Of a stretch of DNA of 64,000 bases, positions 1-24,432 are shown one piece after another. The translations under genes were made by a program, and so were the position numbers. The notes beneath the pieces are model-generated. The model was not told the DNA's origin and did not search any database. It saw nothing but the letters and a program-made list of their open reading frames with translations. This stretch comes from Piromyces finnis finn (Eukaryota > Fungi > Neocallimastigomycota). The stretch covers positions 372,001 through 436,000 of the forward strand of contig MCFH01000001.1 in the NCBI GenBank assembly GCA_002104945.1. Direction: 5' to 3'. Each line of letters opens with the position of its first letter. Within the stretch, counting starts at the first letter, position 1.

Positions 1-924
1 ATATGTCCTAGTGGACAATGTTGTTCAAAATATGGTTACTGTGGTACAACAAGTGACCACTGTAGTACTGGTTGTCAAGCTAATTATGGTATTTGTACTA
101 ATAGCACAATAACTACCACAAATAGTGATCTTTGTGGTAAAGAAACTGGAAATAAATGTGCAAATAATTTATGTTGTTCAAAATATGGTTATTGTGGGGA
201 TTCAGATGCCCATTGTTCCGTTAGCCAAGGATGTCAAGCTGGTTATGGACGTTGTGGTGATTTTGTTTCTAACTCTAAATTACAATACTATTACAAGTGT
301 AAAAACCCAAATCACTGGGCTCTTTCCTTTGATGATGGACCATACAAATATGATATGGAATTACTCAATCTTCTTAAAAAAAAAGGTGTTAAAGCCACTT
401 TCTTCCTTAATGGTAATAATGTTTTAGATATCACTTCAAAAAAGGGTGAGGCAATTGTTAAAAGAATGTATAAGGATGGACATGTTATTGGTTCACATAC
501 TTGGAAACACAGTGACCTTACCCTTCTCAGTAAAGAAGAGATTATTAGCGAAATGACAAAGTTAGAGAATGTTCTTCAAAAATATATTGGTAAGAAACCT
601 GCTTTTATGCGTCCACCATATGGTTCTGGTGCTAATAATGCTGAAATTGCTTCTATTTTATCTGATCTTGGATACACCGCTTCTTGTATATGGAATGTTG
701 ATACTTTAGATTGGGATAAAGTTGGGGATATTGATTATTCTATTAAAGTTTTTAAAAGTAATTTAGGTAATCCAATTATGTCTTTAAACCATTGTTTTTA
801 TGAAGGTATTACTGAAGCTACCTTACTTGCTTTAGCTGAAGCAGAAATTGATTTTATGTTATCTAAAGGATATACACCAGTAACAATGGATGTTTGTCTT
901 GGACTTGATGCTTATCAAAAATAA
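1..924 (+). CDS. Chitin deacetylase (CE4/NodB) with at least two N-terminal CBM18 chitin-binding domains; 5' end lies outside the window
   Basis: Frame 1 is open from base 1: CCSKYGYCG twice (hevein/CBM18), then SFDDGP, HTWKH, RPPYG, DTLDW, LNH (all five CE4 motifs intact); stop at 922-924; no intron in the visible part. Confidence 0.93.
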   Translation: MCPSGQCCSKYGYCGTTSDHCSTGCQANYGICTNSTITTTNSDLCGKETGNKCANNLCCSKYGYCGDSDAHCSVSQGCQAGYGRCGDFVSNSKLQYYYKCKNPNHWALSFDDGPYKYDMELLNLLKKKGVKATFFLNGNNVLDITSKKGEAIVKRMYKDGHVIGSHTWKHSDLTLLSKEEIISEMTKLENVLQKYIGKKPAFMRPPYGSGANNAEIASILSDLGYTASCIWNVDTLDWDKVGDIDYSIKVFKSNLGNPIMSLNHCFYEGITEATLLALAEAEIDFMLSKGYTPVTMDVCLGLDAYQK

Positions 925-2309
925 GTTAATGTCAATTAAGGAATAACAACCTTTGTTTTTTTTTTTTTTTAATAAGAAAAAATATAGGACAAAAGATACA
1001 AATAAATTAAAGTGATAAATCTAATTATTTTAATAACATATAAATGTATTGCTTTTATTATTATTATTTTTTTTTTTATAAATATATCAAATCAAATCAG
1101 ATTAATTACACAATTATTATTTTTAAATTAAGTATTAATATTTACAACTGTATATCTATTATCTATCCAACATATATATTTTTTAACAAAATAAAATTTT
1201 ATTTATAATCAAAAGAAAAGACAAAAATACAATTAAAATATTTACTTTTAATTGTTATTCAATTTTATAAAAATTCATTTTCAGTATTTTATTAATGCCA
1301 ATTCAAAATTGAAAATTATACTATTATCAATCTAAGTTAACTAATAAAAAAAAAATAAAAATAAAAATAAAATTAATTTTTTGTATCACTGATATAATTT
1401 ATAAATTTTCACATATATAACCATACCATAATACAATTATCAAATGATATTTTTTTTTATTATTTTCAACCTAATTTCAATATCAATTCATGTAGTTATT
1501 ACATAAGCAATTATATATATATATACATTTAAAATAAGTATACATTAAATAAAATAATTTAAGTATTTATATACATATAATACATAAACTTATCATTGTT
1601 GCTATCTGTTATTATTATTTATAATGTTTTTAATTTAACTATTAAAGATTTATTTATATTTTATTTTATCTATCTATTTATTTATTTTTTTCAAAATAAA
1701 TAATATTTTATGAACCTTTAAGTATTTTATGTTATTAAATTATCTAAACATCAAAATAATTTTAGTGTAGTATCAATAATAAAAAATATTTAGAATATTA
1801 ATTAATATTTTGGATTAGAGTTAAAAATATCATACAATAAATATTTTTATTATAGTGAGTTATAATGATTTTATTTTTTCATATTTCTCTAAAACCGTCT
1901 GCATAATTTTATAAATACCTTTGTTATATAGTTCTTACAAAACTGTAATTCAGTATAATTTTATTAAATTTTACATTATTTCTAATGAATTTTATGTTGT
2001 CTTATTCAGCATACTAATTCTAAATAGTTTTTATTTTTTAAATTTACAGCATCAAGAGAACTTACATTTCATTTAGAAATAAACGGGGAAAAAAATAATA
2101 ATAATAAATTATATTTAGTTGAATTAATATTAATAACGTTGTTAAATATAAATTATTAATTATTTTTTTAATTTTGTAAAATGTATATTATTTATTCATG
2201 ATTTGTTAATCTTGTTCAATTTAATCTTTTAATTTCATTTTTATTTTTATTCTTTTTTATAATAATACATTTTGATAAGTATTAATCACCACACCTATTT
2301 CTTAATAAA

Positions 2310-2311
<2 letters not shown>

Positions 2312-2358
<47 letters not shown>

Positions 2359-2890
2359 TTCCGAGTGCATTTCTCCCATCGATCAGAGTTAGCTCCAATG
2401 GTGGTTCTTAGAGAAACGTTGGCTCATTCCTATTGCTAGGTGGTTGTGACCCTCCTGGTCTGTCATACTGTTTCTTCAGCTTCGACGCTCACTTAATCCA
2501 TGTACATTAGATGCATGTCGTTGTACGATATTTCACAACTACAATGCTAAGCCTCTTATAGTCAATTTGATCACGTGTCAACCGCCCCCTAATGTTTACA
2601 CTTAAATTGATTAAGGAATATTATGTGTTTTTGGCATAGCCTAAGTCACCACTTATTAAGTTCTAATTTGGAATGTACCATGTACACTAGACCCTCTCAG
2701 GCCGGCTAGACGAGTGTTATTATCATAGTAGTAAATTAGAAAGTTCATTTATACTTACCTGAATATCATAACCCAACCCATGGCAAACCCAGTGGGAAAA
2801 TCCACAGGCACTGACATCTGCGGGGTCGAACCAGAAGCCTTATGTATGCTAAGGAAACGCCTTAACAACCAGGATAAAAACTGGAACGAC
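2312..2890 (-). mobile_element. Full-length tRNA-derived SINE, copy 1 (535-bp body plus 44-nt poly(A))
   Basis: Reverse complement of the copy at 62839-63373 with no difference found by eye; B-box GGTTCGACCCC; poly-T 2312-2355 on + strand; direct repeat cttaataaaca(ttt) at 2301 and 2890 flanks it (TSD). Confidence 0.9.
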
Positions 2891-3666
2891 TTAATAAACA
2901 TTTATTTTTATTATTATTTAATATTTAAAATTTCCTTTTTATTATTATGTTTTTGTAGTGGTTAAATTATAACTCTTATTATTGTGTTTTTTTTATTAAT
3001 AAATAAGGTTTTATTAAATATTTTGAATGTGCCGTTTTCTATGATGATAAATGAAAGATTTTTAAAAAAATGGCCGCATTTCATTTATTTAATAATTTGT
3101 AATAAAGAAATGGCACCTCAATATCTATTGGTCAATAATAATAAAAAAAAGTTTTAATAATGATTTCTTCTAGTATTTTCATTTTTTTTTTTTTTTATCA
3201 AATGTTTTTTTTTTTTATTTTATTATGTGTAAAAAAAAAAAAAAAAGGGAATGAATAAAGGATACTAAAGTTGGGATATCGGCTGATAAAAAAAAGTTAT
3301 AATGAACAAGAATTATAAAATAAAGTGTTGCTTACATTTAGAAAAAAAAAAATAAAATTTTTTTATATTAAATTTTTATTGGTATTAATAATAATTAATT
3401 TTATTTTTAATTATTATTTATATTAATAATATTAAAATTAATAAAATCAAAAATATTTTTAATTTTATTATTGTTTAAAAAGTAATTGAATGGATATATA
3501 AAGCCAAAGAATTCTTTTAATAATAATAACTTTTTTTTTTTTAAAGAAATAAAAGCATATTATTTAAAAAGAGTATTTAAACAACATTAATATTTAAAAG
3601 TTTTAAAATAAATAATAAATAATAATTTGAATACAATACATAATAATAATTAAAAAAAAAAAAAGA

Positions 3667-4885
3667 ATGGTTTTGGTATCAAATTTGAAAAAAACTTTAT
3701 TGTTTATTACACTTTCTTCATTTATTAAATCTAGTATTGCTTTAGAACAATTCATCACTTGTATCAATAATGGAGATATTGCTTTAACTTTTGATGATGG
3801 TCCAAGTTTAGATTATACTAGTAGAATTCTTGATATTCTTGATTATGAAGATGTCAAAGCTACTTTTTTTGTTAACGGTATGAATACATGTGATTTAAAG
3901 AATAATCAAGTTGCTAGAGTATGTTTCTAACCAATATTAAATAAACATGAAAAGAAAATAATAGTAATAATAAAAGAATAGTAAAAGAAAAATATCATTA
4001 ATATTTATAGAATGAATGAATATTTATTTTTTTATTTTTCCTTAATAATAGGATATTATAAAAAGAGAGTATGAAAGTGGTCATGTTATTGCTAGTCATA
4101 CCTATTCTCATCCTCTTACTGGTATTACACCTTTAGGCGAAAAAAAATTGACTTTTGAAATTAATGCATTAAATAATATCCTTTATGATATTGTTGGTGT
4201 AAAACCAGCTTTCTTTAGACCTCCTTTAGGTGAATATACTCCTGAAAACGCAATAGTTCTCGAAAACTGTGGTATCACTGCTGTAAGAAATATTGAATAT
4301 ATTTCAAATTATAATTTAATAAATTTTTTTTCATTTTAATTAATTATTTTATTTTATTCTTTTTTTTTTTTTAAATTTATTATTTAGAATATTTTATGGA
4401 ATTTAGATTCAGAAGATTGGAATTCTCAATATAATGCCACTCAACAATATGTTGATATATTGGGAACTAGTGATCCATCAGTATCTTCATTTATTACATT
4501 AAATCATGATATTCAAGAAGTAACTGCTATGCAAAATTTGCCTATAGTCATTCCATATATTAAAAGTCTCGGATACCGATTTGTTACTATGGATGTATGT
4601 ACTGGTATGAGCGCATATCAAGATGGTAGTAATCCTCCTAAAGTTAGTACAAATTCAACTTCATATAAAAAAGGTAATAATCCTTATATCCCAATAACCT
4701 CTAATTTAAATTCAAACGGTAACACATACGGTAACACATATGGAATGTCTAATAACATGAATAGTTATGATGCTGTCAACAATGAAGGAATAACTTTCGA
4801 TCTTGAGGCTGGTGGTGCAATTCATTCTCATTCTTTTGGATTATTCGCACTATCCTTTTTATTTATCATTTTTTATTTAATTTAA
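3667..4885 (+). CDS. Probably GPI-anchored CE4 chitin deacetylase, 3 exons (3667-3918, 4052-4282, 4388-4885), ~326 aa, catalytic motifs intact
   Basis: Signal-peptide-like N-terminus; TFDDGP, HTYSH, RPPLG, DSEDW, LNH; two phase-0 GT-AG introns give one continuous frame; hydrophobic C-terminal tail ([16 protein letters not shown]). Confidence 0.9.
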
Positions 4886-5563
4886 TTTAATTAGATGTAT
4901 ACATTACATGATACCATTTTTCAATACATGTATATAAACAAAAAACGACTAAATTAAGCTATTTTTTAAAAAATTTATTATATATTAATAATAATAATAA
5001 TATAATTATTATTTTATAACTATCTATCATTATCTTTTAATATATCTTTATTTAATAAAGTGGTTCATTCTTTTATCACCGACTTTTTCTATTTTCCAAT
5101 AATATAATATATGAAAGTTTTCTTTGACATTATTTATTTTAAGTATCAACACTTTTTAATTATTTTTTTTTTTCTAATAGCAAAATTAAGATACACATTT
5201 ACTTTAAATTTTAATAAGATGATTTATATATATCATTTGCTACATAAAATGTGATATTTTGTAATACTACATAAAAAATATTTTTCTATTCCTTATACTT
5301 TGGTCATAAATAAAAAAAAAAAAAAACTTTTTAAATTAAGATTTTTTTTGGCTCTTTATTTAATTATTGATATTTTAATTATAATATAAATTATTTATTA
5401 ATATAATTATAAAAAATTATTTTAATAAAATTCTTTTATAAAAATTTAATTATATTAACATAATAGTAATAAAGAATAATATATTACTTATTTCTAATAT
5501 ATATTTAAAAGAATTCAAAAAAAATATAAACTATTAGGTAACTTAAAAAAAGTCTATCAATTC

Positions 5564-7941
5564 TTAAAATAATAAATATAATGAAGAAATAAGAATCATA
5601 ACGAATGAAGAGGTAATTGGATTAATCTTAATAAATCCGCTTTCACTAAGTTCACCATTATCACTAGATTCACCATTATCAGTATTAACAGTATTACCAT
5701 TATTTATGGTATTAGAGTTGGAGTTGTTACCATTATTGATATTGTTTCCATTGTTACTAACTGGTTTTTCTTCATCTTCACTTTCATTGTCACTTACTTG
5801 GACATATTCGTTATCATTGTCACTATCGACATCGTCATCATCAATATCAATATCTTTATCATTTTCACTTTCACTTTCATTGTCACCTTCACTGCTACTT
5901 TCACTATCACTTGTTGGTTTTGGACCTAATGAAGTAGTGGTTTCAGTAGTAGTGGTTTCAGTAGTAGTGGTTTCAGTAGTAGTAGTTTCAGTAGAAGTAG
6001 TTTCTTCAGTTGTGGTAGAAGTGGAAGTAGTTTCTTCAGTAGTGGTAGAAGTGGAAGTAGTTTCTTCAGTAGTGGTAGAAGTGGAAGTAGTTTCTTCAGT
6101 AGTGGTAGAAGTGGAAGTTGTTTCTTCAGTAGTGGTAGAAGTGGAAGTTGTTTCTTCAGTAGTAGTAGAAGTGGAAGTTGTTTCTTTAGTAGTAGTAGAA
6201 GTGGAAGTTGTTTCTTCAGTAGTAGTGGTTGAAGTTGTTTCTTCAGTAGTAGTAGAAGTGGAAGTAGTTTCTTCAGTAGTAGTAGAAGTGGAAGTTGTTT
6301 CTTCAGTTGTAGTGGTTGAAGTAGTTTCTTCAGTTGTAGTGGTTGAAGTTGTTTCTTCAGTAGTAGTAGAAGTGGAAGTAGTTTCTTCAGTAGTAGTGGT
6401 TGAAGTAGTTTCTTCAGTAGTAGTGGTTGAAGTAGTTTCTTCAGTTGTAGTGGTTGAAGTAGTTTCTTCAGTTGTAGTGGTTGAAGTAGTTTCTTCAGTT
6501 GTAGTGGTTGAAGTAGTTTCTTCAGTTGTAGTGGTTGAAGTAGTTTCTTCTTCAGTAGTAGTGGTTGAAGTAGTTTCTTCTTCAGTAGTAGTGGTTGAAG
6601 TAGTTTCTTCAGTTGTAGTGGTTGAAGTAGTTTCTTCTTCAGTTGTAGTGGTTGAAGTAGTTTCTTCTTCAGTAGTAGTGGTTGAAGTAGTTTCTTCTTC
6701 AGTAGTAGTGGTTGAAGTAGTTTCTTCAATAGTAGTAGTAGATGTTACAGTAGTAGTAATTGGTATAGTTGTGGTAGTAGTAGTTGTTGTTGTTGTAGTA
6801 ATGGTAGTAGTTGTTGTAATTGGTTCTTCGAAATTTGTGGTGGTATCTTCAATATCAACATCATCATCATCAAAATCTTCAAGAAATTCAATAATAGTTG
6901 GGTATGCTGCTCTAGATGCTATTGATGGTTGTACAACTTTAGCCGAGGTAACTAAAGAATCTTCAACATATTCATCTTTTAATCTTTTAACTAATAAAGT
7001 ATCCTCTTCATCAATTTCTTGATAAGCATTTACACCAATACATTCATCTATTGTAACAAATTTATATCCTAAACTTTTTACATAAATAATTATATTTTCC
7101 AATTCGTTTACAGGAGAATTATCATGATTTAGTGTAATAAATGAGTCTGTAGATGGATCTGAATTATCTAATATATTTTTAAATTGTTCTATACCCTTTG
7201 AATTTTTATTCCAATCTTCTGAATCTAAATTCCATAAGATATTCTTTTAATTTTTTTTTTAATTTAATAAATATAAATTATATATTTAAAAAAAATTGGT
7301 ATAAAATATTTTAATAATATTAATAATAGGTTCATATATTATAAATTTTTTCTTTTTTTTACATACAGCATTGAAATCACATTCTTCAAGAACTTCTAAC
7401 TTTGATTCATTATAATCACCATTTGGTGGTCTAAATAATGCTGGCTTAACACCAATAATATCATAAATTGCATTATTTAATTTATTAAGATCTTCTTCTA
7501 ATTCTTCATTACTTAATTTTGAAATACCAATTGGGTATGAATAAGTGTTACTTCCTATGATATGACCTTCACTAAATTGTCTTTCAATGATATCCTATAT
7601 TATTTATTTATTTGATTATTTATTCATTCATTCATTTAATAATTAATATTCAATCAATAATATGTATTTTTTAAAAAAAAATGGAAAATTTTTTATACCT
7701 TTAAACTTTGATTTTCAATAATACCATCTTTTTTTCCATTTACAAAAAATGTTGCTTTAACATTTTCTTTTTTAAGAATATTTAATATACTTTCGGTATA
7801 TAAAACATCTGGACCATCTTCAAATGTTAATGCAATTTCTCCTGGATTACTACAATGATTATATGTTTCGATGTTAACAGCGGTTACTGCATTAAAAATT
7901 GCTGTTAATATTAATAATGATTTTTTAAAACAGGAAAACAT
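5564..7941 (-). CDS. Probably GPI-anchored CE4-fold protein with long Thr/Glu mucin-like stalk, predicted catalytically inactive; 3 exons (7941-7699, 7594-7367, 7243-5564), ~716 aa
   Basis: Spliced translation gives TFEDGP, GSNTYSYP (instead of HTYSH), RPPNG, DSEDW, LNH; then a ~460-aa T/E/D-rich region and a hydrophobic C-terminal tail; both GT-AG introns are phase 0. Confidence 0.9.
5930..6810 (-). repeat. Coding minisatellite of 21-27-nt units encoding (E)ETTSTTTT / EETTSTSTTT repeats
   Basis: About 30 tandem units such as gaagtagtttcttcagtagtagtggtt on the + strand, inside the last exon of the 5564-7941 gene. Confidence 0.9.
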
Positions 7942-9479
7942 TTTTAATGTATTTTTTATAATTATTTAAATTAGTAATTATTTTTTTTATTGATGTTTAA
8001 ATATTGTTAAGACAAAACTATGTTTTTTTTTTTTTTTATTATTATTATATAAATTATTTTATTGTTAATGATATTAAAAAAAAAAAAAAAGAAGAAAAAA
8101 TTGGCATTTTTATGTGTTTTTCGTTTCCATAATTTAACTAATAATAAAAAATAATTTTCTGATAATAATTAATATTAAATTTAAATTTATTTCAAATTCA
8201 AAGTTAATTAACATTAATTAAAAAATAATTATTTAATAATTGATATTTTAAATATTTTAATGGATTTATTATACTAATTAGTCAAGCAGTTTAAATGAAT
8301 ATTTAAATATCCATCTAAATTCAAAAAAATATTTTTTTTTATTATTAATAGGAAAATATATCCAATAATATGAATAAAATATAATAATTAAAAGAGTAAC
8401 ATTAAGTTTATTATAATAAACTTTTTTGAATAACTTTATTACAATGTAATTTAAAGAAGAGTAAACTTTAATCATAATAATTACAATTTCAAAAATAAAA
8501 TTTAAAATTAAAATAAAAAACTATATAATTAAAATTGCAATTATTATATTAATTATGTGGAATACAAGATTTGATTATTATTGACATTATTGATTCTTAA
8601 TTCATGTTTGATTGATGTAAGCTAATATCAAACAATTTATCATACTTCATTTTTGATGAAAATAAGTATATAAAAGTTTCTAAAATTTTAATTAATATTA
8701 TTTATTTCTTATCAATCCACCTATTAAATGATTTTTTGATCTTTATCGCAGTTAAATAAAAATGATAATAGTTAACTTTAAAAGTCCATAATTATCATTT
8801 AAGTTTTATTTTATCAAACAATAAAAATAGAGAATAAATATTATTGAATATTTTTGGATTTTAAATCCATTTATACACATTTATTAATATAATGTAATAA
8901 ATTATATACTACAAAGAATACTAAATTAATTAAATAGATCAAAAGAAATATATAAAAAGAAATATATATTTTATATATATTTCATATTTTACTTTAAATA
9001 TTTATACGTATTCAAGATAAAATATTTTATATCATTGTCATAATGTTAATTATTCAATAAGGTTTAAATAGTTACTTTAAATATTTATAAATATTTTATG
9101 TAATGTTAATTATTTAATAATTAAATATTTAAACTTTATTTATTTAATTAAAATATTTTATAAAAAAAATAAGAAAAAAAAGAATTATGAAAAAAAATTT
9201 TGGATAAATATTTAATTATTATAATAATAGGATTTAGTTAAAAAAAAAGTTTAAAATTTGTATTGACATAATACATTTCATTTATTATTTATTACTAAGC
9301 AATATATTTCATATTTAATATTAATTCTATAATTAAAAGCATTTTGAGAAAAATTAAATATATTTGTCTATAAAATTATACATTTTAATTAGTAGAAAAA
9401 ATTATTTGATGATAATTTAATAATTTAATTTATTATTATTTTTTTATTAGAGTTATTTCTCAACTCATTTTAGTAATAA

Positions 9480-10320
9480 CGGATGGATCAACACATTTAT
9501 CTATATAAAGTGTCATTGAATAGTAAATACACATAAAGTCATTATTATTAGATAGAAGATAATCATTGGCGTCGTAAACATTAATTGGTTCATATTTAGC
9601 ATTATCTGAAGCATTATAGGTAGTATTAACTTCTAGATTCTATAGCTAATTTTGAAACATTGTTATTTTTTAAATTTAAAATATCGACTTCATTAAATGT
9701 TTTATGGTCTCTATACAATAATTTACCACCAATAATAATCATAGTATAATCATCATAGAATAACATTTTACCTTCTTTGAAGGTATCCCCAATATTTAAG
9801 ATATCCTCATCTGCATCATAGGCATGGTTGAAGATTTCACCAAGTGCCCATTTATATTCTCCATCGCTTAATTAAATTTTTATTATTAGAAATTAAATTA
9901 GTAATATCGGTCCTTTTTGTAGTATTTTTTGTGAATTTTATATTTATTATTATTTAATGTAATTTTAGCTTCATTGAAACTATTTCGATTCTACAACTTC
10001 CATCATGAAATGGATGAATCTTTCATTTTCATGGCAACTCCATATGTTTATATATCTTTACTATTTTTAATAAATTCCATTAATTTATTACTATTACCTC
10101 CATACACAGTATCTGTTGATTGATTATCATCACCTCCAATATATTTAAAATAACGCCCTATATTATTAACAATAAGCTACACCAAACCATGTAGGTTCAA
10201 TGTATTTCGAATACTCTTCAATAAACTGTTTCGTTTTTTAGAGTTAATATAAATGAGATCGACTATTTTTGTGATATCATTATAGTCGTGCATACAAAAC
10301 TCCTTTTTATCTGTCTTTAC
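9480..10320 (-). pseudogene. Degraded coding-like fragment of unidentified family
   Basis: Less AT-rich than the flanks; minus-strand frames give protein-like stretches (KQFIEEYSKYIEPTWFGVAYC; SDGEYKWALGEIFNHAYDADEDILNIGDTFKEGKMLFYDD...) broken by stops and frameshifts. Confidence 0.35.
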
Positions 10321-11046
10321 AAAAAAATATAATTAAGAAAATAAAAGATTTTATTCTTAATTATATTGAGGTGTTAAGGATATTTAAAAATGGTGTATCC
10401 AAATTGAATTATGATAAAGATAATTTCATTAATGGTATCTCAGAAAACGATATAAATAACACGGAAAAAGCATTCAATAAAATATAAAATATTCAACACT
10501 ATTGTTGATAATGAAGGAAATAAATTAGTATATTATAATATATTTAATAATGATAATCAATCTAAATTACATAAAGATATATTAATTAAAAATGTTAATA
10601 AATAAATTCTTATAATTTATTAAACGAAAACTCCGAGAAATGCACATTTGCATGTTACTTAATTTTGGTAAAGATAATAAAGAATTTGATTAAGTAGTTT
10701 TTTTCATGATATATTGTATTGTATTCCACAAGTTTTGAAAGAATCATAATTTTTTTTTATATATATACATTATACACTAAAAGTTAAGATAAAAAAAAAA
10801 CATCACTCTATATTTCATTAGTAATTATTTTTATATTCATTTCTTATTAAAGAGAATATTTTAAAATTATAATTTATTTATAATTATATATACTTTTTTT
10901 CTTTTTTTTATTTTATTTCATAACTTTTTATTTAAATATATATTTTTTATTATAATAATCTAAATTTTAATCTTTTTTAAAAAAATACAATTTTGTTTAT
11001 TAATACATAAATATTAATAAAAAATGTCTATTTCAAAATTTAAGAT

Positions 11047-12511
11047 TTAAAATAAAAAATAGAAAATAGTAAATAATAATACTAATAAAGTAGAATTAAT
11101 TGTGCTTATTCTAGTAAATCCATTAGATTCAGCATTTCCATTAAGAGAATTACCATCATAATTATTAATATTACCGTTTTTATTTGTATTAGTATTAGCA
11201 CCCATGTTTGAATTTTGATTTTGACTGTCTAAACTTTGGTTTTGACCTTCATATGGGGTTTCATCAATTTCAGCATTGTTAGCAATGTCTTGAATATTTA
11301 CACCTAAATTTTCTTCATCACTACTACTTTCAATTGCTTCATATTGAATATTTTCATTATCTTGGGTATTGTTAATGACATCCTCCTCACTATATTCATT
11401 ATTGATTTGATTATCACCATAATTCATTCCATTATTACCATTATTGTTATTGCTGTTGCTGTTGTTATTATAGCTGTTGTTGTTGTAGTTGCCATTTCCA
11501 TTTACATTGGTAATATTATTGTTAACAACAGTATTATTGCCACTATTACCATTATCATTTTCATCAGCACTGTCAATAACTTGGTCATCATTGATATTAG
11601 ATTCTATATTATCATCAATATTGTCTTCGACGTTATTTTCAATATTGTTATTATCAACATTGATATTATTGTTGCTTTCATTAATGTTTTCTTGGGTATC
11701 ATTGAAGTCATCATTGTTATTGCCATTATCATTTTCATCAGCACTATCAATAACTTGTTCATCATTAATATTACTTTCTATATTGTCATCAATATTGTCT
11801 ACAATATTGTTGTCAGCAATATTTTCAATAGTATTATCATCATTTATATTATCATTAATATTAACATCATCATTGTTATCATCAATATTTCCAATTTCAT
11901 TATTGTCTACTTCAATATTATCTTGAGAATTTTGAGAGTCATTATTATTGTTATCTTTGTTTTCGTTAGTTTCACCTTCATTATCATCATCGCTTTTATT
12001 ATCATCTTCCTCTTCATTGGAACTATCGTCACTACTACTGTTGTCATCATCCTTGTCATCATCCTTGTCATCATCCTTGTCATCATCCTTGTCATCATCC
12101 TTGTCATCATCCTTGTCATCCTCCTTTTCACTATCACTAACAACAATATCATTTCTATCATTATCAATTACTTCTTCAGCTTCTTCTTCATCACTAACTT
12201 GTGGTAAATCAATTTCATCATCGTTATATCTTTTTCCTAAGTTATCATCACTTAGAGGATCTGATTGGTATGGTTCCATACCAATACATTCACTCATAGT
12301 AACAAATTTATATCCAGATTCCTTACTATACTTTATTATTTTCTTTAAACTTTCTAATGTATTTCCTTGAATATCATGATTTAATGTGATAAATGAATTA
12401 CTACCTGAATCTAAATTTCCAAGAATTTCTATATATTGTTCGTAAGCATTTCTATTTTTATTACTCCAATCTTCAAAATCTAAATTCCATAAAATATTCT
12501 ATATTATTATA

Positions 12512-12544
<33 letters not shown>

Positions 12545-13243
12545 ATATTAAAAATAAAAAGGTAGAAATATATAAAATTTTTAGTTTCCAGAGGAAAGTG
12601 CAAATTTTAATTGTATATATACCATTTTATTAAAATAATATCTAGATTTTTTTATTTTCAATATACTTACAGCTGTAATATTATTTTCTTCGAGAACTCT
12701 CAAGCTTTCATCATTAAAATCGCCATGTGGTGGTCTAAAGAAGGCTGGTTTTTTTCCAATAACATCATAAATTGTATCACTTAATTTGGTAATATCATTT
12801 TTTAATTGTTCATTTGTTAATTCCGTAATACCAACTGGATGACTATAGGTATGACTAGCAATAACATGACCACTATCAAATTCTCTTTTAATGATTTTCT
12901 AAAAAAAAAAATAATAAAAAATTATAATTAATTTTTAATAATTTTTTTTCATTACAAAAATGCGAGAGATGATAAAAAAAAATAAAAAAGAATATATTAT
13001 AATTACTTTGGCATCTTCATTTTCAATTAATTCATTATCTTCACCACTAATGAAAAATGTTGCTTTAACATTTTCTTCATCAAGGATATCTAAAATTTTA
13101 TTTGTAAATTCAATACTTGGACCATCATTGAATGCTAATGCAATTTCTCCAGGTTGGGTACAATGATCAAAAGTTTTAATAGCTTTAGCCGTATTAAAAA
13201 CAGCAGCTAAAATCAAAAATGTATTTTTAAACTTATTAAGCAT
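11047..13243 (-). CDS. Probably GPI-anchored CE4-fold protein with long Asp/Asn-rich stalk, general-base Asp replaced by Asn; 3 exons (13243-13007, 12898-12671, 12498-11047), ~638 aa
   Basis: Spliced translation gives AFNDGP, HTYSH, RPPHG, DFEDW, LNH; ~385-aa D/N-rich region with (DDDK)n and a duplicated DNIDDNIESNIND.QVIDSADENDNGN block; hydrophobic C-terminal tail. Confidence 0.9.
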
Positions 13244-16223
13244 TTTCTATATTTAATATTTTTATCAAAACAATAAAAAATATAATAAATAAATGAATAA
13301 ATGATTTTAAAAAAATTATACGTTCTTATCACTTTATATATACTTTAAAAAAAAAAAAGAAAAATATAAAAATTCTACTTTACTAATTTGATCCTAATTA
13401 TTATATATATCGAAATATTTCATTTGTGAATTAATAATTGATTGTTTTTAGTATTTATGAAAATTTGGTTTTATTACTTAGACTTTATTGTAATTAAACA
13501 CTTTTTTTTTTTACCTCTAATAATTATTTATCATTTTATAAAATAAATTGATATAGAAACATGTCAATAATATCAAAATTCTGAATATTAAAGACGAATT
13601 ATTCGTGAATTATTATTTATAATTAAAGACTTTCTATTATAATTAAACATTTAATTATCATCATCCTATGATTTTTTTTATAATTTAATCCATTATTAAA
13701 TTGTAAAACTTTATATTAATATAATTAACTTTTTTTATGTATTAAATAAATTATTTTATGTGAAATAATCATAAATTATTTGTTCATATGATTAATCATA
13801 TAGATAATACTACGCCACGTTATATGAATTTTTTTATTTATTCATCGTCTATTAAAAAAAGTATAATAGTATTAACCTATTACAAGCATTAAATAAAGAA
13901 TAAACTTTCTTTTCTATATATATATAAATCATTAGTAACATCCAATATATTTTGTTTAATAATTCTACACAGAAAATATTGTTTGGAATTTAATTGGAAT
14001 TAGTTTTATAACAATCCAATAATCGATTCGATAAAGTTCTCGATTGTTATAGTTATAGTAGTGAAATTTCTAATAATAAAAAGAACAGAAGATTAAAAAT
14101 CTCAAATAAGAAAACCCACTCGAGCAACCCGCCGCATGTATTAAATTATCTTGTTTGTAGAAAAAAAAAATTGAAGTTAACTGTTGAAGAGTTTAGAAAA
14201 GTAACGCTCATAGTCAGATAAGGGAAAAACTGAAAGCTACTCAACAGACTACTAATCAGAATTCGTAAGCCATTAAATTTCAGTTAGTATTTCTTTTTTT
14301 AGAGATGCTGGTGAATTTTAGAGACCCTAAAAAAAATTATGATAAATATGAAAAGGATTTACAATTGGCTTGAAGGGGAGAAATATATAAATGGTCAAAT
14401 TATTTTTTATAGAAAATAAAGCATTCTAGATTGTTTTATAAATTATAAAATTTATATTAATATTAATAATATCATATTATTAATAAATAAATAAATAAAT
14501 ATATATATATATAAACCATGAAATGTATATATATTATTATCATTATCTTTATTATTATAAAAACTACTTTTAATACTATACCTATTAATTAAAACTTTAC
14601 AAAAAGTTAACTATAATATAGATTTCTTTATCCAACTCTAATAATTAAGGAATTTCATTGTTATAGAGTATTATATTTTTAAATAATGTTTACAACTATA
14701 TTTATGAAAATTTTATTTCAGCTATAATAAACTACATTATATCATTAAAATGCATCTTCATTATTAACCTTGTTTATTAATAAGATTTAGAATCATATAT
14801 ATAATGTATGTGTAATATGTTATTATGAGTTAATTATATTTTCAAATAAAAATTAACTGAACTATTTTTAGAATATCTTTTCTCTTAAAATATATATATA
14901 TAGGAAACGTAGTTGTATGATTAAAGGATTTCAAATCTATCCACACCAAATGAAATAAAAGTTCATAAAGTTTAAGTTTTATAATTCAACATCTTCAAAT
15001 CTCTCCACTCTAATATACTAATGAATTAAAAGGATTAACAGTCATGTTAAATACTAATGATTAAACCTTTTTGAAAAACTTTACAGAGATTGAAACTCCA
15101 ACCAAAACCTCTTTTTTAGATGCACTAAAATTTTTTTTCCCTTTTCCTACTTGATCACAACTAAATTAAAAAAATTAAAGTTTTTATTATGACAGCATGG
15201 AATTTAGCTACAAAAATAATTAAACAGAAAATTGTCAATTTTTTTGTTTGTTTATTGGAGGAATAAAAAAATATTTTTTCTTCTTTCTATATTTGATTCA
15301 TTTTAATATAAATAAATTAAAAATAGAGTTTTTTTTAATTCTAATTTTAATTTATTTTATAAGTTTAATGTTTTATTAAACTATTAAAAATAGATTAATT
15401 TAATTTATAATATTATTAAATAAACTTTTTTAATTTAATCATTTCCTAATTCTAAACTATTATTTAAAAAAAAAAGAAGGTAGTACAAGTTCTAGAATAA
15501 AATGTGTTTTATAAATTAAAAATATAAAAATTTTATAAAATATATAGAATACATATATAATATGTATAATGCATAATATATAAATAGTATTATTTAATTA
15601 ATACAATATTATTTATTCTATATATTAAAATCAAATGATAGTGAGATTACAATAAAAAAATTAATTAAAAATTTAATTTTATTTATATTTAAAATTATTA
15701 CTTCAAACCGCTAACAATAATAATATGTTGTATTATTTATTGTATTATATATTATATTATATATTCAATATAAATAAAATATATAAAAAGAAAAAAGTAT
15801 ACAATATAAATAATTATTGGTAAATATATAAATAATAAATAATAATATATACTGCTATTAGGGCTAATGTAATATATAATAAAAAAATATTAAATAGTAT
15901 TATTAGAATAATTAGAATAATTAGAATATATATAAAGATATTCATTTCTCTAAGTCTTTTATTTTTTATAAGAAATTAAATAAAAAAAAAAAAAAGTAAT
16001 TAAATAAATAAATTCTATACTTTTTTTTTTTTTTAAAAAAAATTGTTCTATTATAATAATTAAATATAATAAAAATAAAAGAAAAAGAAAAATATTCAAA
16101 TTATATATATATATTAAACAAAAAATAAAAATTCAAATAAAATCTTTATAAAAAAAAAAAAAATCAAATTTAATATTAAATCCGAAATTCAAAAAATAAT
16201 AATAATATAAATTTCAATTAAAA

Positions 16224-17717
16224 ATGAGATACATTAAATATATTTTAGCTGCTATTGCTTTAATTTCAAGTGCAAGTGCTGCCAATGAAGGTAAATGTGG
16301 ACCTGGTTTTGGTTCATGTTCATCTGGTCAATGTTGTTCACAATATGGTTACTGTGGTACCACTAATGATCACTGTGGTACTGGTTGTAAACCAGATTTT
16401 GGTCTCTGTTTATCAACTAAGAAAACCACTACTAAAACAGTAAATAAAAAGACTACTACTAAGGCAGCTGTTACTAAGAAAACTACCACCACAAAGGCTG
16501 CTGTCACCAAAAAGACTACCACCAAAAAGACTACCACTAAAAAGACTACCACTAAAGCAGCTGTCACCAAAAAGACTACCACCACCAAGGCTGTTGTCAC
16601 AAAAAAGACTACCACCACTAAGGCTGCTATCACTAAGAAAACTACTACTGTTAAACCAGTTACTACCACAGTTGCTCCAGTTGAAACTAAATTACCAGTT
16701 TCTACTACTGGTATGTGTGGTCCAGATGATGGTATTTGCCCAGGTACTTCATGTTGTTCTCAATACGGTTTCTGTGGTGTTTCTGATGCCCACTGTGGAA
16801 AGGGTTGTCAATCTGAATTCGGTCGCTGTGGTATCACTGAAACCAAAACTACTACTATAATTAAGAAGACAACCACTATCAAGAACTCTTCTACCACCAC
16901 TGCTGCTAACACTGATAAAATTTCTACTAATGGTAGATGTGGTGCTGAAGATGGTTCCTGCCCAGCGGGTCAATGTTGTTCACAATATGGTTACTGTGGT
17001 AGTACTGAAGATCACTGTGGTACTGGCTGTCAATCTGAATTTGGTTACTGTGGTGAAATTGAAACCGTTTCCGGTTTTAAATACTATTCAAAGTGTATAG
17101 CCAAGAACCAATGGGCTCTTACTTTTGATGATGGTCCATACGAATATGATATTAAATTACTTGATTTACTTAAAGCCAAGGGTGTTAAGGCTACCTTCTT
17201 CATTAATGGTAACAATGTTATGGACATTAGAACTGAAAAAGCAAAAAAGATTATTCAAAGAATGAATAAGGATGGTCACATTATAGCTTCTCACACTTGG
17301 TCTCATGCTAACATTGAAGAAATTTCAAAAAAAGATTTAATTATTGAAATGACTAACCTTGAAAAATACATTTCCGAATACACTGGTAAGAAACCTGCCT
17401 TTATGCGTCCACCATATGGTGCTGGTAATGGTAAGTTAGATATTGCTAAGACTCTTAAAAGTCTTGGTTACACTGCTGCTTGTATGTGGAATGTCGATAC
17501 TCTTGATTGGGAAAAATCCGGTAATGTTGATTATGCTCTTGGTGAATTTAAAAAGAATCTTGGTAAACCAATTCTTTCACTTAACCACAATTACTATGAA
17601 GATATCACCGAAGAAAGATTATTAAAGTTAGTTGAAGCAGAAATTGATTACATGATTTCTAATGGATACACTCCAGTTACTATGGATGAATGTCTTGGTC
17701 TTGAAGCCTATCAATAA
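16224..17717 (+). CDS. Secreted chitin deacetylase: signal peptide, three CBM18 domains, Lys/Thr-rich linkers, CE4 domain
   Basis: 497-aa intronless ORF; three CCSQYG(Y/F)CG domains; TFDDGP, HTWSH, RPPYG, DTLDW, LNH intact. Confidence 0.95.
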   Translation: MRYIKYILAAIALISSASAANEGKCGPGFGSCSSGQCCSQYGYCGTTNDHCGTGCKPDFGLCLSTKKTTTKTVNKKTTTKAAVTKKTTTTKAAVTKKTTTKKTTTKKTTTKAAVTKKTTTTKAVVTKKTTTTKAAITKKTTTVKPVTTTVAPVETKLPVSTTGMCGPDDGICPGTSCCSQYGFCGVSDAHCGKGCQSEFGRCGITETKTTTIIKKTTTIKNSSTTTAANTDKISTNGRCGAEDGSCPAGQCCSQYGYCGSTEDHCGTGCQSEFGYCGEIETVSGFKYYSKCIAKNQWALTFDDGPYEYDIKLLDLLKAKGVKATFFINGNNVMDIRTEKAKKIIQRMNKDGHIIASHTWSHANIEEISKKDLIIEMTNLEKYISEYTGKKPAFMRPPYGAGNGKLDIAKTLKSLGYTAACMWNVDTLDWEKSGNVDYALGEFKKNLGKPILSLNHNYYEDITEERLLKLVEAEIDYMISNGYTPVTMDECLGLEAYQ

Positions 17718-18839: not shown

Positions 18840-21800
18840 TTAGGAGGTTTCAAGCAATTCAAGGGTACATAAACATTCTTTACCCGTCATCATTTTAGAA
18901 TACATAATAACATTGCAGGCTTCATCATGAAGTAAAAGTTTAATGGTAGTACCGGTAAAAATGACTTGCTTATAATTACTGGAATCAAATTCATCCCAAA
19001 TAGAGATATAATCTTTGGTAAATACATAAATATATGGATGACGATAAGCAAAGGATTTAGGAATGGCATTCCATTTAAAGAATACTTTTGATCGAGTACG
19101 ATTACCATTTTTATCAATAAAGAAACCAATTTTATTATAACAAAGTAAAAAGTCGTTTTGTTGGGTTTTAAACATTTTCATTGGTGAATATTCTGATTTT
19201 AATAAATTTTTAAATACTACATCCCCCGGATTTAATAAACTTTGAGTTGTAAGATTCTTAATACTGACAACTTCAAAACTCTTTGAACAAGCCACACAAA
19301 TGGAACGACGTAAGAAACGAATACTAACACCTTCTGATGGTATATAGAATTGCTTAAAACTTGTGACAACATCACCAGTAAAATAAAGTTTTTGGAATTT
19401 CTTTCTATTTTCTACATTAGCTAGGAAACCTTTGGGTTCAAACATTTTAACTACTGTTTTATTCGTTGAGGCTTTAGCACAACATAATATAAATTTTTCA
19501 TCACAAAAACCAGTGGCTATAAAACTAACATTGGAACTAATCTTTTTATTATGTTTAACATACTTTTCATTAATATATACACCTCTAAGGGTTAAAGATA
19601 TACTAAAGGCATACACTTCACGATCTATAATATTTAAAATATAAAATAATGATATAAAATAGAATTAATATTAAATAAATTTGTATTTTTTTTTTTTTGT
19701 TATATAATTTTAATTTTTGTTTTGTTTTGTTTGTTTGTTTGTTTTTTGGAAGGGTTGGACAACTTACTAGCTAAAACAAATAATAAATCAAATTGTTCCA
19801 TGGTTTCTATTTGAGTAATTTTTGAAATTCGAAGTAATGGGTTCATGGCATGATTGTACAAACCATAGAGACCAATTTCATTAGAAACTAAACAAGTCTT
19901 ATTCTTTAATAAATGAATGGTTGAAACAGGACAATCAAGTTCTATATGAGAGAAAAATATATTTTCTCTAATAATTGGTGCTGGTAAGGTTTCTTGTTGT
20001 TTTTGAATGGCTTCAACCCAAGCCTTTTGTTCAGAAAGAATTGGTGTAATAAAGGTATAGCTACTAGTACTTATATGACTTATAGTAAAGGAATAACCCA
20101 TGGTATTTACATTAGAATTATTTTTATGAGTATTAAGTACTAAACGTTTACTTGCCATATGACTTTCTGAATGAGGTTTTAAACTTATTTGCTTATCGGA
20201 ATGAGTTAGTGTCATGAGGGATATTGGAATGGGTTTTCCATAAATGTGACAATTATTATTCTTTTCATAGGTAATAATTATGAAATTATCTAATAAAAGA
20301 AGGGTAACTTCAATGATCGGTTCATTAACATAATTTGATACGATAAGTGACAACTTTCCCTCACGAATATATTCACGTTTTGGATCTTCAAAGTTAACAC
20401 TAGAAATATCATTCTTCTTTTCAAATCTTAATAATTCATACCATTGTTCCATCTTCAAACGATTTGTTTCTTTACCTGCCAAATGATTTACCTCCTTTAA
20501 TATATCTTCAATTTTTGTATTGGCTTCCTTTAATAAAATTTGATCACGATGATTCTTTGAAGTATTCTTAAGAATATCACGAATTAAAATGGGGTAACGA
20601 CCTAATCTAGTGGTTGGTCTGGCTAAGAAACTTTCAACTGGTAATCTTCTAAATTGTGGCATTTTTTGACATTCCTTGAAAAAGTTATTCAAATAAATAT
20701 TTTTATTCTTTTGTATTTGTAATATTTGTTTAGCGGATGGTTGTTTTTCACCATACTTTGTGTAACAAATAAAGGTACCAACACATTCTTTAACAACATC
20801 ACCTAACGATTCTAATACCGGTTTTCTCTTTTGAATTTTACGAAGATTTTCATAAAATTCAGTATTAACTTGAGCTATCTCTTCAATATTACCGAATACC
20901 AATTCAACAAAACGATTATCCACACCAATAACCTTTCCATTTCTCAATGGATTGATCATATATTTAATGACGGATTGTAAATCATTAACATATTCCTTTT
21001 CAGTACGAATAAATTCAAATATAATTTCTTGACGTTTAATTTGTTGATGGGTTAATTTACCAACATAGGATTTACCAATAGAAGTTGACCATGCCGTTTG
21101 TAAACCAATGGTAATACTTAAATTAGAGAATCTACCCGCAGTTTCTTTTGAAGTAACTTTTTCTTTTATTCCTCTTCTTGGACAGGAATAGGCATAACAT
21201 GGAGATTCATCTGTACAAGTAGGGGAATAACATTGAGCAATTTCAACAAGAACACCACATGGATCACTTTCTTCAAACTCACCATTTTGACCATTTTTCT
21301 CACTTAACTTTCTTAATATAGACACTATTTAAATAGGTATATATATATATATATATCAAAATAAAAAAAAAAAAAATAGGTAAACAAGATTGATATTTAA
21401 AAAATATATTTATTATCTTTTTTTTATTACTCTTCTTTTCTGGACTTAGTCTTTCGGTTTCTTTTCTTTCCAAAATAGCAATAGGTTTGGCCAAATCTTC
21501 AAATTGATAGTAATGGTAATGACTATCTAATAATTTATGAAGATAGACTACATCATGGAACATACCTTGTTCTTCAAGTGCTTGGCCGGTGGTTTGAGCA
21601 ACCTTTCTATCATCAGTACCAAGAATATCTGCAAGAGCAGTAACAGCATCATAACCAGAGAAACTTTGCATATATTCAATTGAATCTTTAATATGTTTTA
21701 CCAACTTTATTCTCTTTCTGAAATTGGCAGCAATTTCAGACATATTAGCAGAATGATTAACTAATGGGAATTTTTGTTTTATATCACCTGAATGATAAAC

Positions 21801-24432
21801 GTAGTCATCTTCAAATTCTTCTTCTTTTGAATAATCTGTAATACTGGAAGAAGCAGTGGTACTCGATTTTGAAATAGTATCAATTTTAGATACTTCACTT
21901 TGATTATCACCCATAGCATTATCATTTATTCCAGTATTATTTGAATAATGTGATTCACCAATATAATCTACTGAATTTTGACCAGTAGCTATTACAACTC
22001 TTTTATTAATAGGTTGAGATACACTTTTAACCGGTGGAGTTGGAGGAACTATTTGTGAAGGGATTTCCAAACTTTGACGTCTTAATGGTTTTGGTAAAGA
22101 ATTTGATGAAGGAATACTAACACTTTCTCTGTAATGGCGTCTTGGTGGTACAGATGGTGCACCATCATTCTTTTGACTGTTACTATTCATTTCATAATAA
22201 CGAAGTGGTCTTTTTGGTGGATTTGCGGACATATTTGGATCTAAACTTGGTGATGGACTGGTATAATTCTCATTTTTGATTGAATGATTATCCAAGGATA
22301 TAGAAGATAAATGGGTATTGTATGACTTTTCATCGCCAATATAACCTAAAAATATATAAGAATTTTAATAAATATCAAAATTTAAATTTTATTTTTTATT
22401 TTTTTAAATTTTTTTTTTTTTTTTTTGGAATAAAAAAGTTTTTTTAAAACCTACCATCATTATTAGAGTAAACAGAATTACGACTAGATACAACAGATTT
22501 GACATCATTATTAGAATAAATAGAATTACAATGAGATTTTGATGGTTGATCTTCATATGGATAATAACTATCATAAGTTACATTAGATTGATAACTATTA
22601 TGCTTATATATACTATTGCGACTATCAGTTCTAACGGTTTCTTGACTTGGATTCATATGAGTGTAAACATCTTCTACATGAAGACTTTCTGAACTTGATA
22701 TGGAATTTGTATGTTCAGGTTTTAAGTTTTCAACTGATGTAATTGGCGAAGGATCAGCCATTTCTTTAGTATCATTTTCATCGACTTTATCAAATAAATC
22801 TTTAATTTCATCGGTTAATACATTTAATAAATCTTTATTTGATTGATCAAGTTTTTCCGACAAAAAGTCAATGTTAAAGTCTAAATCATTATCTTCTGAT
22901 TTTATAATTCTAAGATCTAAATCTAATTCAGGAAGTTGATATTCTTCATCACTCTTGATGATACCTTCCTTTCCTACACTAGTAATTGTAGAGATATCAA
23001 AATTTTCATAGTTTAATGAATCGCCATTTTCTATATTTTTCAAATCGGTACTAAGAATTTGAATTTCTTTCTCCTCTGAAGAATCAAGATTTTTAAAGGA
23101 TTTTTCTGTGTTAGCTGTTATTGTCTTTTCATCCAAAACTAAACTATTATTAATTAAATCCTTTTCCTTTTCTTCAGCCTCAATAACAATACGATTTTCA
23201 GTCTTGACTCTAACTTCTTCAACATCATCATCTGAACTATAATAATCTAAATTGTGGGTTTCCTTAATATCTGGAACTTCTTGATAGTAATTATCTTCCA
23301 CAGTACTATTTACATCCATCATATTTGGCACTGTTATAACCGATGAAGAATAAGAATTGTTACGATGGTGACTAGATGATTTATAAAGACCAGGTTCTTC
23401 ATGAAGATATGGACTGTATCCGTTATCATAACGAGCAGAGGATGCCAATGAATTAGGACTACCCATATTATTAACCCCCAATTTTTGAGAAGACACCGAT
23501 TGGCCGCGTCCTCTTTGGAATTGACGTACTGGAACTGGAAGGGAAACTTCACTAATACCAGGACTCAATGAGGGAGAATGAGAATAACGATAGGATGGAG
23601 AATGAGAACTATCTGGAGTTACGTAGACAGAATGACGGATTGGAGGATTTGGGGAATTACTTCCAGCTAACATTGGTGATAAAGATGGGGAACTATTACT
23701 TGATCTAGTAGGTGAAACCTGAACGGGCATCACTTTATGAGTATTACCTTGAGGTGGAATAACTTGTCGACGAGGAAGCGGAGGGCCACTATTATTATTT
23801 CCTACTGGCATTTGAGGATTAGGTGGATATTTTCTTGGTGGATTTGATAAACCATGTTCAGATGAAATATGAATTTCTGGTGAAGGTCTTTGTTCATAAC
23901 CATAATTAACTTGAGAACGTTGATTTTGAGGTTGATTATAGCCTTGATATATTTGGGATGGGTTATTTAATGGACTAGTTTGATTATAGTAACCTTGATT
24001 ATTTATTGGATTATTATAATTGATTTTTGGTGGTGGACCTCTAGCTGAATTAGGAAAGGATGGAGAAACTTGAATTGATGAACTTGATCTAGCATTATGA
24101 AGTGCTGAATAGGAAGGAGAATGTGATGGGGAATATCTATTTAAAGTTTGTAAGGAATAATTTGTATTTGTAGGTGGTTGAGAATTATAACTTATATTAC
24201 TGGAAGTTGAACTCATACGTTGATGACCCATACGACTAATATTATTATAACTTCCTTGATTATTATAACTTCCTTGATTATTATAACCTAAATTACCATT
24301 ATTATATTGATAGCCTTGATTCATATAGCCATTATTTTTCATATAAGGGTCTACACTTTGAGAAGAATTCAAAGGAGGTGGTGGTGGTCTTCTTTGTCTT
24401 GGTGGTACAGGTGGTACTTGTTTTTGTTGCAT
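18840..24432 (-). CDS. ROM2: Rom1/Rom2/Rgf1-type Rho1 guanine nucleotide exchange factor (Pro-rich N-terminus, DEP, DH, PH, CNH); 4 exons (24432-22455, 22345-21431, 21324-19768, 19624-18840)
   Basis: DEP-like FSGYDAVTALADIL...LEEQGMFHDV; DH KRQEIIFEFIRTEKEYVNDL...FLARPTTRLGRYPILI; CNH-like C-terminus; three phase-1 GT-AG introns join the four ORFs in frame. Confidence 0.9.

Follow-up and report, generated by a model that had tools for sequence, protein, structure and literature searches.

A chitin deacetylase gene cluster in the gut fungus Piromyces finnis that pairs intact genes with putative non-catalytic paralogues on polyanionic stalks

Known CE4 systems and the Piromyces finnis cluster

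We analysed a 64-kb stretch of the genome of the gut fungus Piromyces finnis (contig MCFH01000001.1, assembly GCA_002104945.1; hereafter the window), which carries at positions 1-17717 a cluster of five genes encoding proteins of the CE4 fold (g1 to g5). Judged by its sequence, the cluster arose by tandem duplication of genes for secreted chitin deacetylases; three of the paralogues (g1, g2 and g5) are intact and two (g3 and g4) catalytically crippled. In CE4 enzymes, the first Asp of the TFDD motif is the general base, while the second Asp and the two His residues of the H(S/T)xxH motif are the metal ligands. The Arg of motif 3, the Asp/Trp of motif 4 and the His of motif 5 are needed as well (PMC5855634).

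Fungal chitin deacetylases (CDAs) held by a glycosylphosphatidylinositol (GPI) anchor are known from Cryptococcus neoformans (Cda1-3) and Ustilago maydis (five CDAs), in which the paralogues have divided roles (PMC3280450, PMC8092297). The GPI-type genes of P. finnis are laid out in the same way, with a signal peptide, a single NodB domain, a linker of low complexity and a probable GPI signal, and g2 is an ordinary member of this group. Unlike g3 and g4, the Cryptococcus and Ustilago proteins are active enzymes with short Ser/Thr linkers. The inactive cda6 of U. maydis is also different, being a stop-ridden, unexpressed pseudogene, whereas g3 and g4 combine intact frames with active-site lesions and polyanionic stalks of 380-460 aa.

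Non-catalytic proteins of the CE4 fold have also been described. ECU11_0510 of Encephalitozoon cuniculi (EcCDA, 2VYO) has this fold but neither the base Asp nor the metal His residues, and is devoid of deacetylase activity (PMC5855634, PMC10967932). It resembles g3 and g4 in being an inactive CE4-fold protein of a fungus-related eukaryote, a microsporidian, and 2VYO ranks among the best fold matches for each of the two models that we obtained for relatives of these genes. However, neither an acidic repeat stalk nor neighbouring active paralogues have been reported for it, and it shares about 21-28% identity with the modelled heads. In Bacillus anthracis, the membrane-anchored lipoproteins BA0330 and BA0331 have a stabilising effect on the wall although they are not active as deacetylases (PMC4505593). 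Together with BA0150 (4M1B) and BA3943 (7BKF), the latter named a CE4 pseudoenzyme in PDB titles, they are non-catalytic CE4 paralogues that stand beside active ones, as in P. finnis. A BA3943 mutant is described in the title of PDB entry 6HM9 as having restored activity. This set differs from ours in being bacterial, acting on peptidoglycan, fixed by an N-terminal lipid anchor, devoid of a polyanionic stalk and of independent origin.

The lesion of g4 also has engineered counterparts, SpPgdA D275N (2C1I) and the base mutant of VcCDA, the latter inactive but able to bind its substrate (PMC5855634). The same Asn-type change of the base Asp, with the metal site intact, is seen in g4, in a relative from Piromyces sp. 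E2 and in an 871-aa gene of Anaeromyces robustus. Whereas those mutants were made in the laboratory, the change in gut fungi is natural, and inherited or recurrent in several species.

Since both non-catalytic CE4 proteins and GPI-anchored deacetylases are established, the principle is not new. What appears to be undescribed is the union of a dead head, a very long polyanionic repeat stalk and a GPI-type signal, along with the grading of the lesions and the conserved linkage to active paralogues in Neocallimastigomycota. A survey of the open-access full-text literature returned nothing specific on chitin deacetylases, wall chitosan or CE4 pseudoenzymes of gut fungi. To our knowledge, the cell walls of anaerobic gut fungi have barely been studied.

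Active sites, stalks and anchors within the cluster

The lesions of g3 and g4 affect different parts of the catalytic machinery. In g3, motif 1 reads TFEDGP (7810-7827), the base Asp being replaced by Glu (GAA, 7816-7818), and motif 2 reads SNTYSY (7535-7552), with both metal His lost to Asn (AAC) and Tyr (TAC) and the metal Asp retained. In g4, motif 1 reads AFNDGP (13118-13135), with Asn (AAT, 13124-13126) in place of the base, while motif 2 (SHTYSH, 12839-12856) is intact and the full metal triad is present. We hold with good confidence that g3 would be unable to bind the catalytic metal as CE4 enzymes normally do. With equally good confidence, g4 lacks the general base and neither head should deacetylate, because of the analogy with ECU11_0510 and with the engineered base mutants (PMC5855634, PMC10967932). 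Errors of sequencing or assembly were considered as a source of these lesions and rejected, given that several independent codon changes are involved and that similar ones occur in relatives; this explanation is further disfavoured by one DNA sequencing run that contains 96% of the words of the region.

Both altered heads follow a signal peptide and stand on stalks that end in a GPI-like tail. The stalk of g3 is 462 aa long, rich in Thr and Glu and of net charge -101; that of g4 is 383 aa long, rich in Asp and Asn and of net charge -102. The tails of g2, g3 and g4 consist of 14-16 hydrophobic residues (mean hydropathy 2.1-2.6), their last 20 residues are uncharged, and sites rich in Gly, Ser and Asn precede them. 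By a heuristic that combines hydropathy with small residues, these three proteins are probably GPI-anchored.

Meanwhile, g1, g2 and g5 displayed the general-base Asp of motif 1 and the full Asp-His-His metal triad. Their motifs 1 and 2 are SFDDGP (325-342) and SHTWKH (493-510) in g1, TFDDGP and SHTYSH in g2, and TFDDGP and SHTWSH in g5. Motifs 3-5 (RPP.G, D..DW and LNH, which supply the Arg, the Asp/Trp and the catalytic-acid His) are present in all five genes of the window. Thus g1, g2 and g5 have every residue needed for an active CE4 metallo-deacetylase, and their motifs predict activity. The full g1 protein (P0021, 334 aa) has a signal peptide, two CBM18 modules and the CE4 domain, its first 27 codons, signal peptide included, lying before the window. 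In g5 the CBM18 modules are spaced by Thr/Lys-rich linkers and the C-terminal end is a globular domain free of a hydrophobic tail or anchor signal. These two would be soluble enzymes targeted to chitin through CBM18. By comparison, g2, made up of a signal peptide, an intact CE4 domain, a neutral Asn/Ser/Thr tether of 65 aa and a hydrophobic GPI-like tail, would be held on a short GPI-type tether.

The extent and domain content of the cluster were established by several searches. The window is very A+T-rich (13-36% G+C per kb), and the exact product of 16224-17714 was matched on this contig alone. A tblastn search of its whole length with g5 as query found the five CE4 copies and none beyond them, and no additional copy lies within the 10 kb upstream of the window and g1; the cluster therefore has exactly five members. 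Each gene matched the Pfam profile PF01522 above the gathering score of 23.1 bits, the spliced genes being searched exon by exon: g5 scored 111 bits, g1 121 bits, and exons 1 and 2 of g2, g3 and g4 38-63 bits each. The CBM18 profile (PF00187), with its Cys pattern, matched three stretches of g5 (90 bits) and two of g1 (65 bits). The two introns of g2, g3 and g4 are all GT..AG, in phase 0 and at identical protein positions, and the products called by NCBI on this contig (334, 326, 716, 638 and 497 aa) agree with our models of g1 to g5.

A first-pass annotation, made from the letters of the window, had proposed five CE4-fold genes of three designs within 18 kb, and the searches bear this out in each detail that could be checked. 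Its two CBM18-CE4 fusions with intact motifs are g1 and g5, and g5 has, as proposed, a signal peptide and no anchor signal. The short-tether gene with intact motifs is g2, for which a tether of ~60 aa had been given, and the lengths of ~460 and ~385 aa proposed for the stalks of two proteins with differing lesions come close to the measured values. That annotation left out the polyanionic nature of the stalks, which is the most consistent derived trait.

Features of the CE4 cluster and its downstream flank (positions within the window)
Feature	Position	Strand	Description
g1	1..924	+	2x CBM18 + CE4, motifs intact; 5' end 81 nt before window start
g2	3667..4885	+	Exons 3667-3918, 4052-4282, 4388-4885; 326 aa; P0270
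g3	5564..7941	-	Exons 7941-7699, 7594-7367, 7243-5564; 716 aa
g3 stalk tandem array	5978..6738	-	30-nt (10-codon) unit of TTEETTSTTT type, ~26 copies; core of the stalk
g4	11047..13243	-	Exons 13243-13007, 12898-12671, 12498-11047; 638 aa
g5	16224..17717	+	Signal peptide + 3 CBM18 + CE4, 497 aa; intronless; P0001
DEP/RhoGEF/PH/CNH gene	18840..21914	-	918 aa; downstream of g5

An acid-stalk clade shared by gut fungi

A maximum likelihood tree of 48 head domains placed g3, g4, all other lesion-bearing genes and one further protein, P0268, in a single clade of nine sampled members (support 96/99), here called the acid-stalk clade. This clade is nested in a gut-fungal clade of GPI-type CE4 domains (100/99), where it stands in an unresolved fork next to the g2-type genes with a second intact GPI-type group (89/86) and to a third intact group; the CBM18-type genes form a separate clade. 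Active-site lesions occur in eight of the nine members, whereas the DD and H..H residues are intact in all 39 other sampled CE4 domains (39/39). Within the clade, g4 groups with the E2 gene and P0268 (98/91), and g3 weakly with a 737-aa gene of A. robustus, P0136 and a Neocallimastix protein (81/59). The base position itself varies among Glu, Asn, Ser and Asp. End branches measure 0.5-1.6 substitutions per site in this clade vs 0.05-0.4 in the intact clades.

The relatives come from genomes found by a domain search with g5, whose loci were then inspected for neighbours. A word-index protein search with exon 3 of g4 (region 1-80) gave no match, which reflects the reach of that method, since relatives were found by profile and representative searches. 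Their shared gene order is a RhoGEF gene, the g5 orthologue and then GPI-type CE4-like genes. Since P. finnis, Piromyces sp. E2, A. robustus and Neocallimastix californiae all have a RhoGEF-type gene at the flank of the cluster, it serves as a neighbourhood anchor in gut-fungal assemblies. The acid-stalk genes have the same architecture and intron positions in three genera, and the signal peptide, a Cys pair and an anchor-signal motif (S/N-G-F-T/I-K/R-I) are conserved in their proteins.

In Piromyces sp. E2, the gene beside the g5 orthologue (P0125) is of g4 type, with the same exon structure, TFNDGP in motif 1, an intact HTYNH, an acidic stalk of 186 aa and a tail with the S-G-F-T-K-I motif found in g3 and g4. 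A second acidic stalk of this strain (L002:963-1520, minus strand) lies past an assembly gap, and its C-terminal part (YEEIESSDDDENPGVNIHDI ... SGFTK), aligned by eye, resembles the C-terminal end of the g4 stalk. This homology indicates that parts of the low-complexity stalks are conserved.

On A. robustus contig MCFG01000073.1, three acid-stalk genes follow the RhoGEF gene and the g5 orthologue. P0136 (374 aa) reads TFSNGP, SQIFIH, RSA and VNS and has no D..W motif. The 737-aa gene, which is most like g3, reads AFSNGP, SHSYSN, SPPNG, DLEDL and LNY. The 871-aa gene reads IFNDGP, CHTFSH, CAPNG and LNH. The annotated end of the 737-aa gene (L012:12487-15070, plus strand) consists of acidic repeats (...GSINENY) and has no hydrophobic tail; this means that the model lacks a last exon or that the copy is a secreted, unanchored protein. 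Three CBM18-CE4 genes and a g2 orthologue with intact motifs lie farther on in this contig. The g2 orthologue (L005:16494-17390, plus strand) is intronless, while g2 of P. finnis is interrupted by two introns placed as in g3 and g4, so that intron loss or gain has taken place within a single orthologous group.

The losses go further in Neocallimastix. Beside the g5 orthologue of N. californiae is an inverted pair of near-identical genes of ~200 aa (L009:1518-1828, minus strand, and L009:3829-4520, plus strand; the same in L010). In each, a signal peptide is followed by ~50 aa left over from CE4 exon 1, in which motif 1 is ruined (IFDNKP), and then by an acidic stalk and a tail of hydrophobic residues. 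Elsewhere in the genomes of N. lanati and N. 'constans', a full-length head from which every motif is gone precedes a stalk of DTDNT repeats. Overall, the relatives from A. robustus and Neocallimastix differ in how far motifs 3-5 have been lost. Two further members, P0277 (L014) and P0268 (L015-L020), are known from short Joint Genome Institute (JGI) contigs that are intronless, transcript-like and recurrent in several samples. P0277 has lesions in motifs 1-4. The motifs of P0268 are fully canonical, and the protein ends after an acidic tail of 40 aa with no anchor signal; its contig, of ~1 kb, is present in at least six JGI samples and has almost identical ends in them, as expected of a transcript.

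The stalks of the clade contain 21-42% Asp+Glu, range from 120 to about 600 aa and carry net charges of -24 to about -200, compared with 0 to -10 for the tethers of seven intact GPI-type paralogues. As far as the sampled proteins indicate, stalk charge, and not any particular lesion, is the derived character that the clade shares most uniformly. The N. californiae form, which keeps stalk and tail with hardly any head, suggests that the anchored polyanion makes up at least half of the function under selection.

Structure prediction suggests that the fold of the heads outlasts their motifs. AlphaFold2 models were made of two relatives from alignments of 79-81 sequences. P0125, whose head is 56% identical to that of g4, reached a predicted local distance difference test (pLDDT) score of 96.9 and a template modelling (TM) score of 0.90 to the Colletotrichum deacetylase ClCDA (2IW0). 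The head of P0136, in which all motifs are degenerate, reached a pLDDT of 91 and a TM score of ~0.8. Both are thus confidently predicted to fold as CE4 barrels, and their structure matches include 2VYO, 7BKF, 4M1B and 2C1I.

Selection on the altered heads was estimated from codon substitutions. Pairwise synonymous divergence (dS, Nei-Gojobori) is 0.6-1.0 even for deep paralogues, which indicates saturation together with an extreme A+T codon bias; a maximum likelihood codon model (GY+F3X4+G4 on the tree, eight lesion-bearing heads, 238 codons) was therefore used. The ratio of non-synonymous to synonymous change (omega) was ~0.10, and fixing it at 1 lowered the log-likelihood (lnL) from -4709.21 to -4937.75 (2dlnL = 457), so that neutrality is rejected. 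In agreement with this, open frames of 600-870 codons are kept in several genera in a genome of ~80% A+T. Non-synonymous divergence (dN) between the same species pair is, in acid-stalk genes, 1.6-2.2 times the value of their intact neighbours (0.35 vs 0.157; 0.42 vs 0.27). Column by column, 43 core positions, the Cys pair among them, are conserved in both the acid-stalk and the intact GPI-type clades, while 28 are conserved in the intact clade but variable in the acid-stalk clade. Among the latter are the catalytic base and the Asp of the metal site, the first His with its Thr, Pro of motif 3, Trp of motif 4 and the loop that follows LNHD. The constraint has therefore moved from the active site to the fold.

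Purifying selection, the conserved neighbourhood and the retained predicted fold together exclude decay. By these criteria of sequence conservation, the g3/g4-type genes, under selection in at least three gut-fungal genera, are not decaying and probably encode working non-enzymes. The first-pass annotation had held that the altered genes are not simply decaying, and this is upheld by relatives with the same type of lesion, architecture and neighbourhood and by the omega estimate, which answers its proposal of dN/dS analysis with purifying rather than neutral evolution. The mixture of intact and altered paralogues that it pointed out recurs in the Anaeromyces and Piromyces sp. E2 clusters. In the comparison of synteny and motifs across gut fungi that it called for, relatives in the same neighbourhood bear lesions; P0268 is canonical.

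Proposed role of the acid-stalk proteins and alternatives

Taken together, we think it likely that g3 and g4 belong to a gut-fungus-specific clade in which a folded CE4 head devoid of catalysis sits on an anchored polyanionic stalk, and that its members are non-enzymes of the surface or wall. The clade would have branched off within the GPI-type deacetylases at a time when Piromyces, Anaeromyces and Neocallimastix had not yet diverged. The NodB head would have persisted as a folded module through a piecemeal loss of its catalytic machinery, with g4 losing the general base alone, g3 exchanging the base for Glu and losing both metal His, and some relatives losing up to all five motifs. Meanwhile, the tether would have turned into a long, repeat-built polyanionic stalk with a terminal GPI-type signal. 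The resulting proteins are probably surface or wall glycoproteins, whose negative stalk would span or decorate the wall. It is predicted that the stalk may retain chitosan, a polycation supplied by the neighbouring enzymes, or else divalent cations, and that the head would act as a distal folded cap, the g4-type cap probably still binding metal and chitin oligomers without turnover. This is the functional reading that we prefer, although we hold it with low confidence.

Several observations weigh against the proposal of anchored non-enzymes. The GPI anchoring of g3 and g4 stands on the heuristic described above, and the binding of chitosan or cations by the stalk is a prediction. The fold models are of P0125 and P0136 rather than of g3 and g4, and their alignments are dominated by true enzymes. 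Expression of g3 and g4 is hinted at only indirectly: four sequencing runs that are RNA by our guess contain 33-52% of the words of a stretch of which ~40% is g3/g4 exon, and the relatives P0277 and P0268 lie on the transcript-like contigs described above. The omega of the lesion-bearing heads is no higher than that of the intact CBM18 clade (0.088, from six CBM18-type domains of different depth). Moreover, the saturation of synonymous sites makes the absolute value of omega rough, yet neutrality of the lesion-bearing heads is excluded.

The position of P0268 counts on the same side. This protein is nested in the g4 subclade and fully canonical, and the Asn of g4 may be a change at the level of its lineage. 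Loss of catalysis therefore does not extend uniformly through the acid-stalk clade. When the eight lesion-bearers are held together without P0268, the tree is worse by 9.7 lnL units (approximately unbiased test, p-AU 0.045).

A single catalytic loss at the base of the clade was considered and rejected, as a parsimony count of the lesion label needs at least two changes on the tree and the constraint is marginally rejected. Catalytic residues therefore did not disappear in one clean step; the tree suggests either repeated loss of the base or its regain in P0268.

The best surviving alternative, which we consider possible but doubtful, is the one proposed in the first-pass annotation, namely that the altered heads are kept for binding chitin or chitosan in the groove and that stalk length sets their depth in the wall, where they would act as tethers, shields or sensors. 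It is consistent with the metal triad, motif-3 Arg, motif-4 Asp/Trp and motif-5 His that g4, the E2 relative and P0268 all retain, and with engineered general-base mutants that are inactive but bind chito-oligomers productively (PMC5855634); the active-type enzymes of the cluster would produce the ligand. Against this, the relaxed columns take in much of the active site and the loop behind it, most groove motifs are lost in g3-type members, the N. californiae form lacks most of the head, and stalk length ranges widely within the clade. Binding at different depths is thus only partly favoured and would be a special case, for which the conservation pattern speaks in the g4 subclade only.

Somewhat less probable still is that the whole clade organises chitin and chitosan, with the NodB cap, dead in g3 and base-dead but metal-competent in g4, recognising the acetylated polymer and the membrane-anchored stalk, of about -100 charge, binding polycationic chitosan, so that these proteins and the co-located enzymes that produce it would form one wall-building module, peculiar to anaerobic gut fungi, whose genes are kept together. 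It also seems improbable that the dead heads pair or compete with the active deacetylases, or soak up the chitin-directed factors of rumen competitors, and so tune the amount of chitosan made or shield the wall. Genes for enzymes and pseudoenzymes do remain adjacent across genera, and pairing of the two is common in other families (PMC5106787, PMC10211241); however, the interaction is conjecture, and tandem duplication alone also leaves such linkage.

We consider it very unlikely that g4, with its Asn, or g3, with its Glu as base, still hydrolyses acetyl or other esters through a relocated base or a metal-independent route. Glu would be chemically able to act as a base, the metal site of g4 is complete and its catalytic His present, and migrated catalytic residues are described for some so-called pseudoenzymes (PMC10211241). 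However, both metal-binding His are absent from g3, ECU11_0510 is inactive without its base Asp and His residues (PMC5855634, PMC10967932), and the base position is free to vary in the clade, which is unexpected for a catalytic residue. The least credible explanation, that g3 and g4 are young pseudogenes whose frames are still open by chance, could draw on their faster amino-acid change and on the indirect nature of the signs of their expression, but fails on open frames of 638 and 716 codons in so A+T-rich a genome, on an architecture and intron positions shared by three genera, on the rejection of omega = 1 and on the conserved signal peptide, Cys pair and anchor-signal motif.

Nothing established is overturned by this cluster. 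Its value lies in the compact, graded natural series that it presents within one gene family, from predicted fully active, through base-dead with the metal site kept, to metal-site-dead, which relatives extend to heads that have lost all motifs or are truncated. As the series is conserved across genera, it can serve as a natural experiment in the re-use of an enzyme fold for which catalysis has become dispensable. The acid-stalk proteins are also candidate surface proteins of fungi that are important in fibre digestion.

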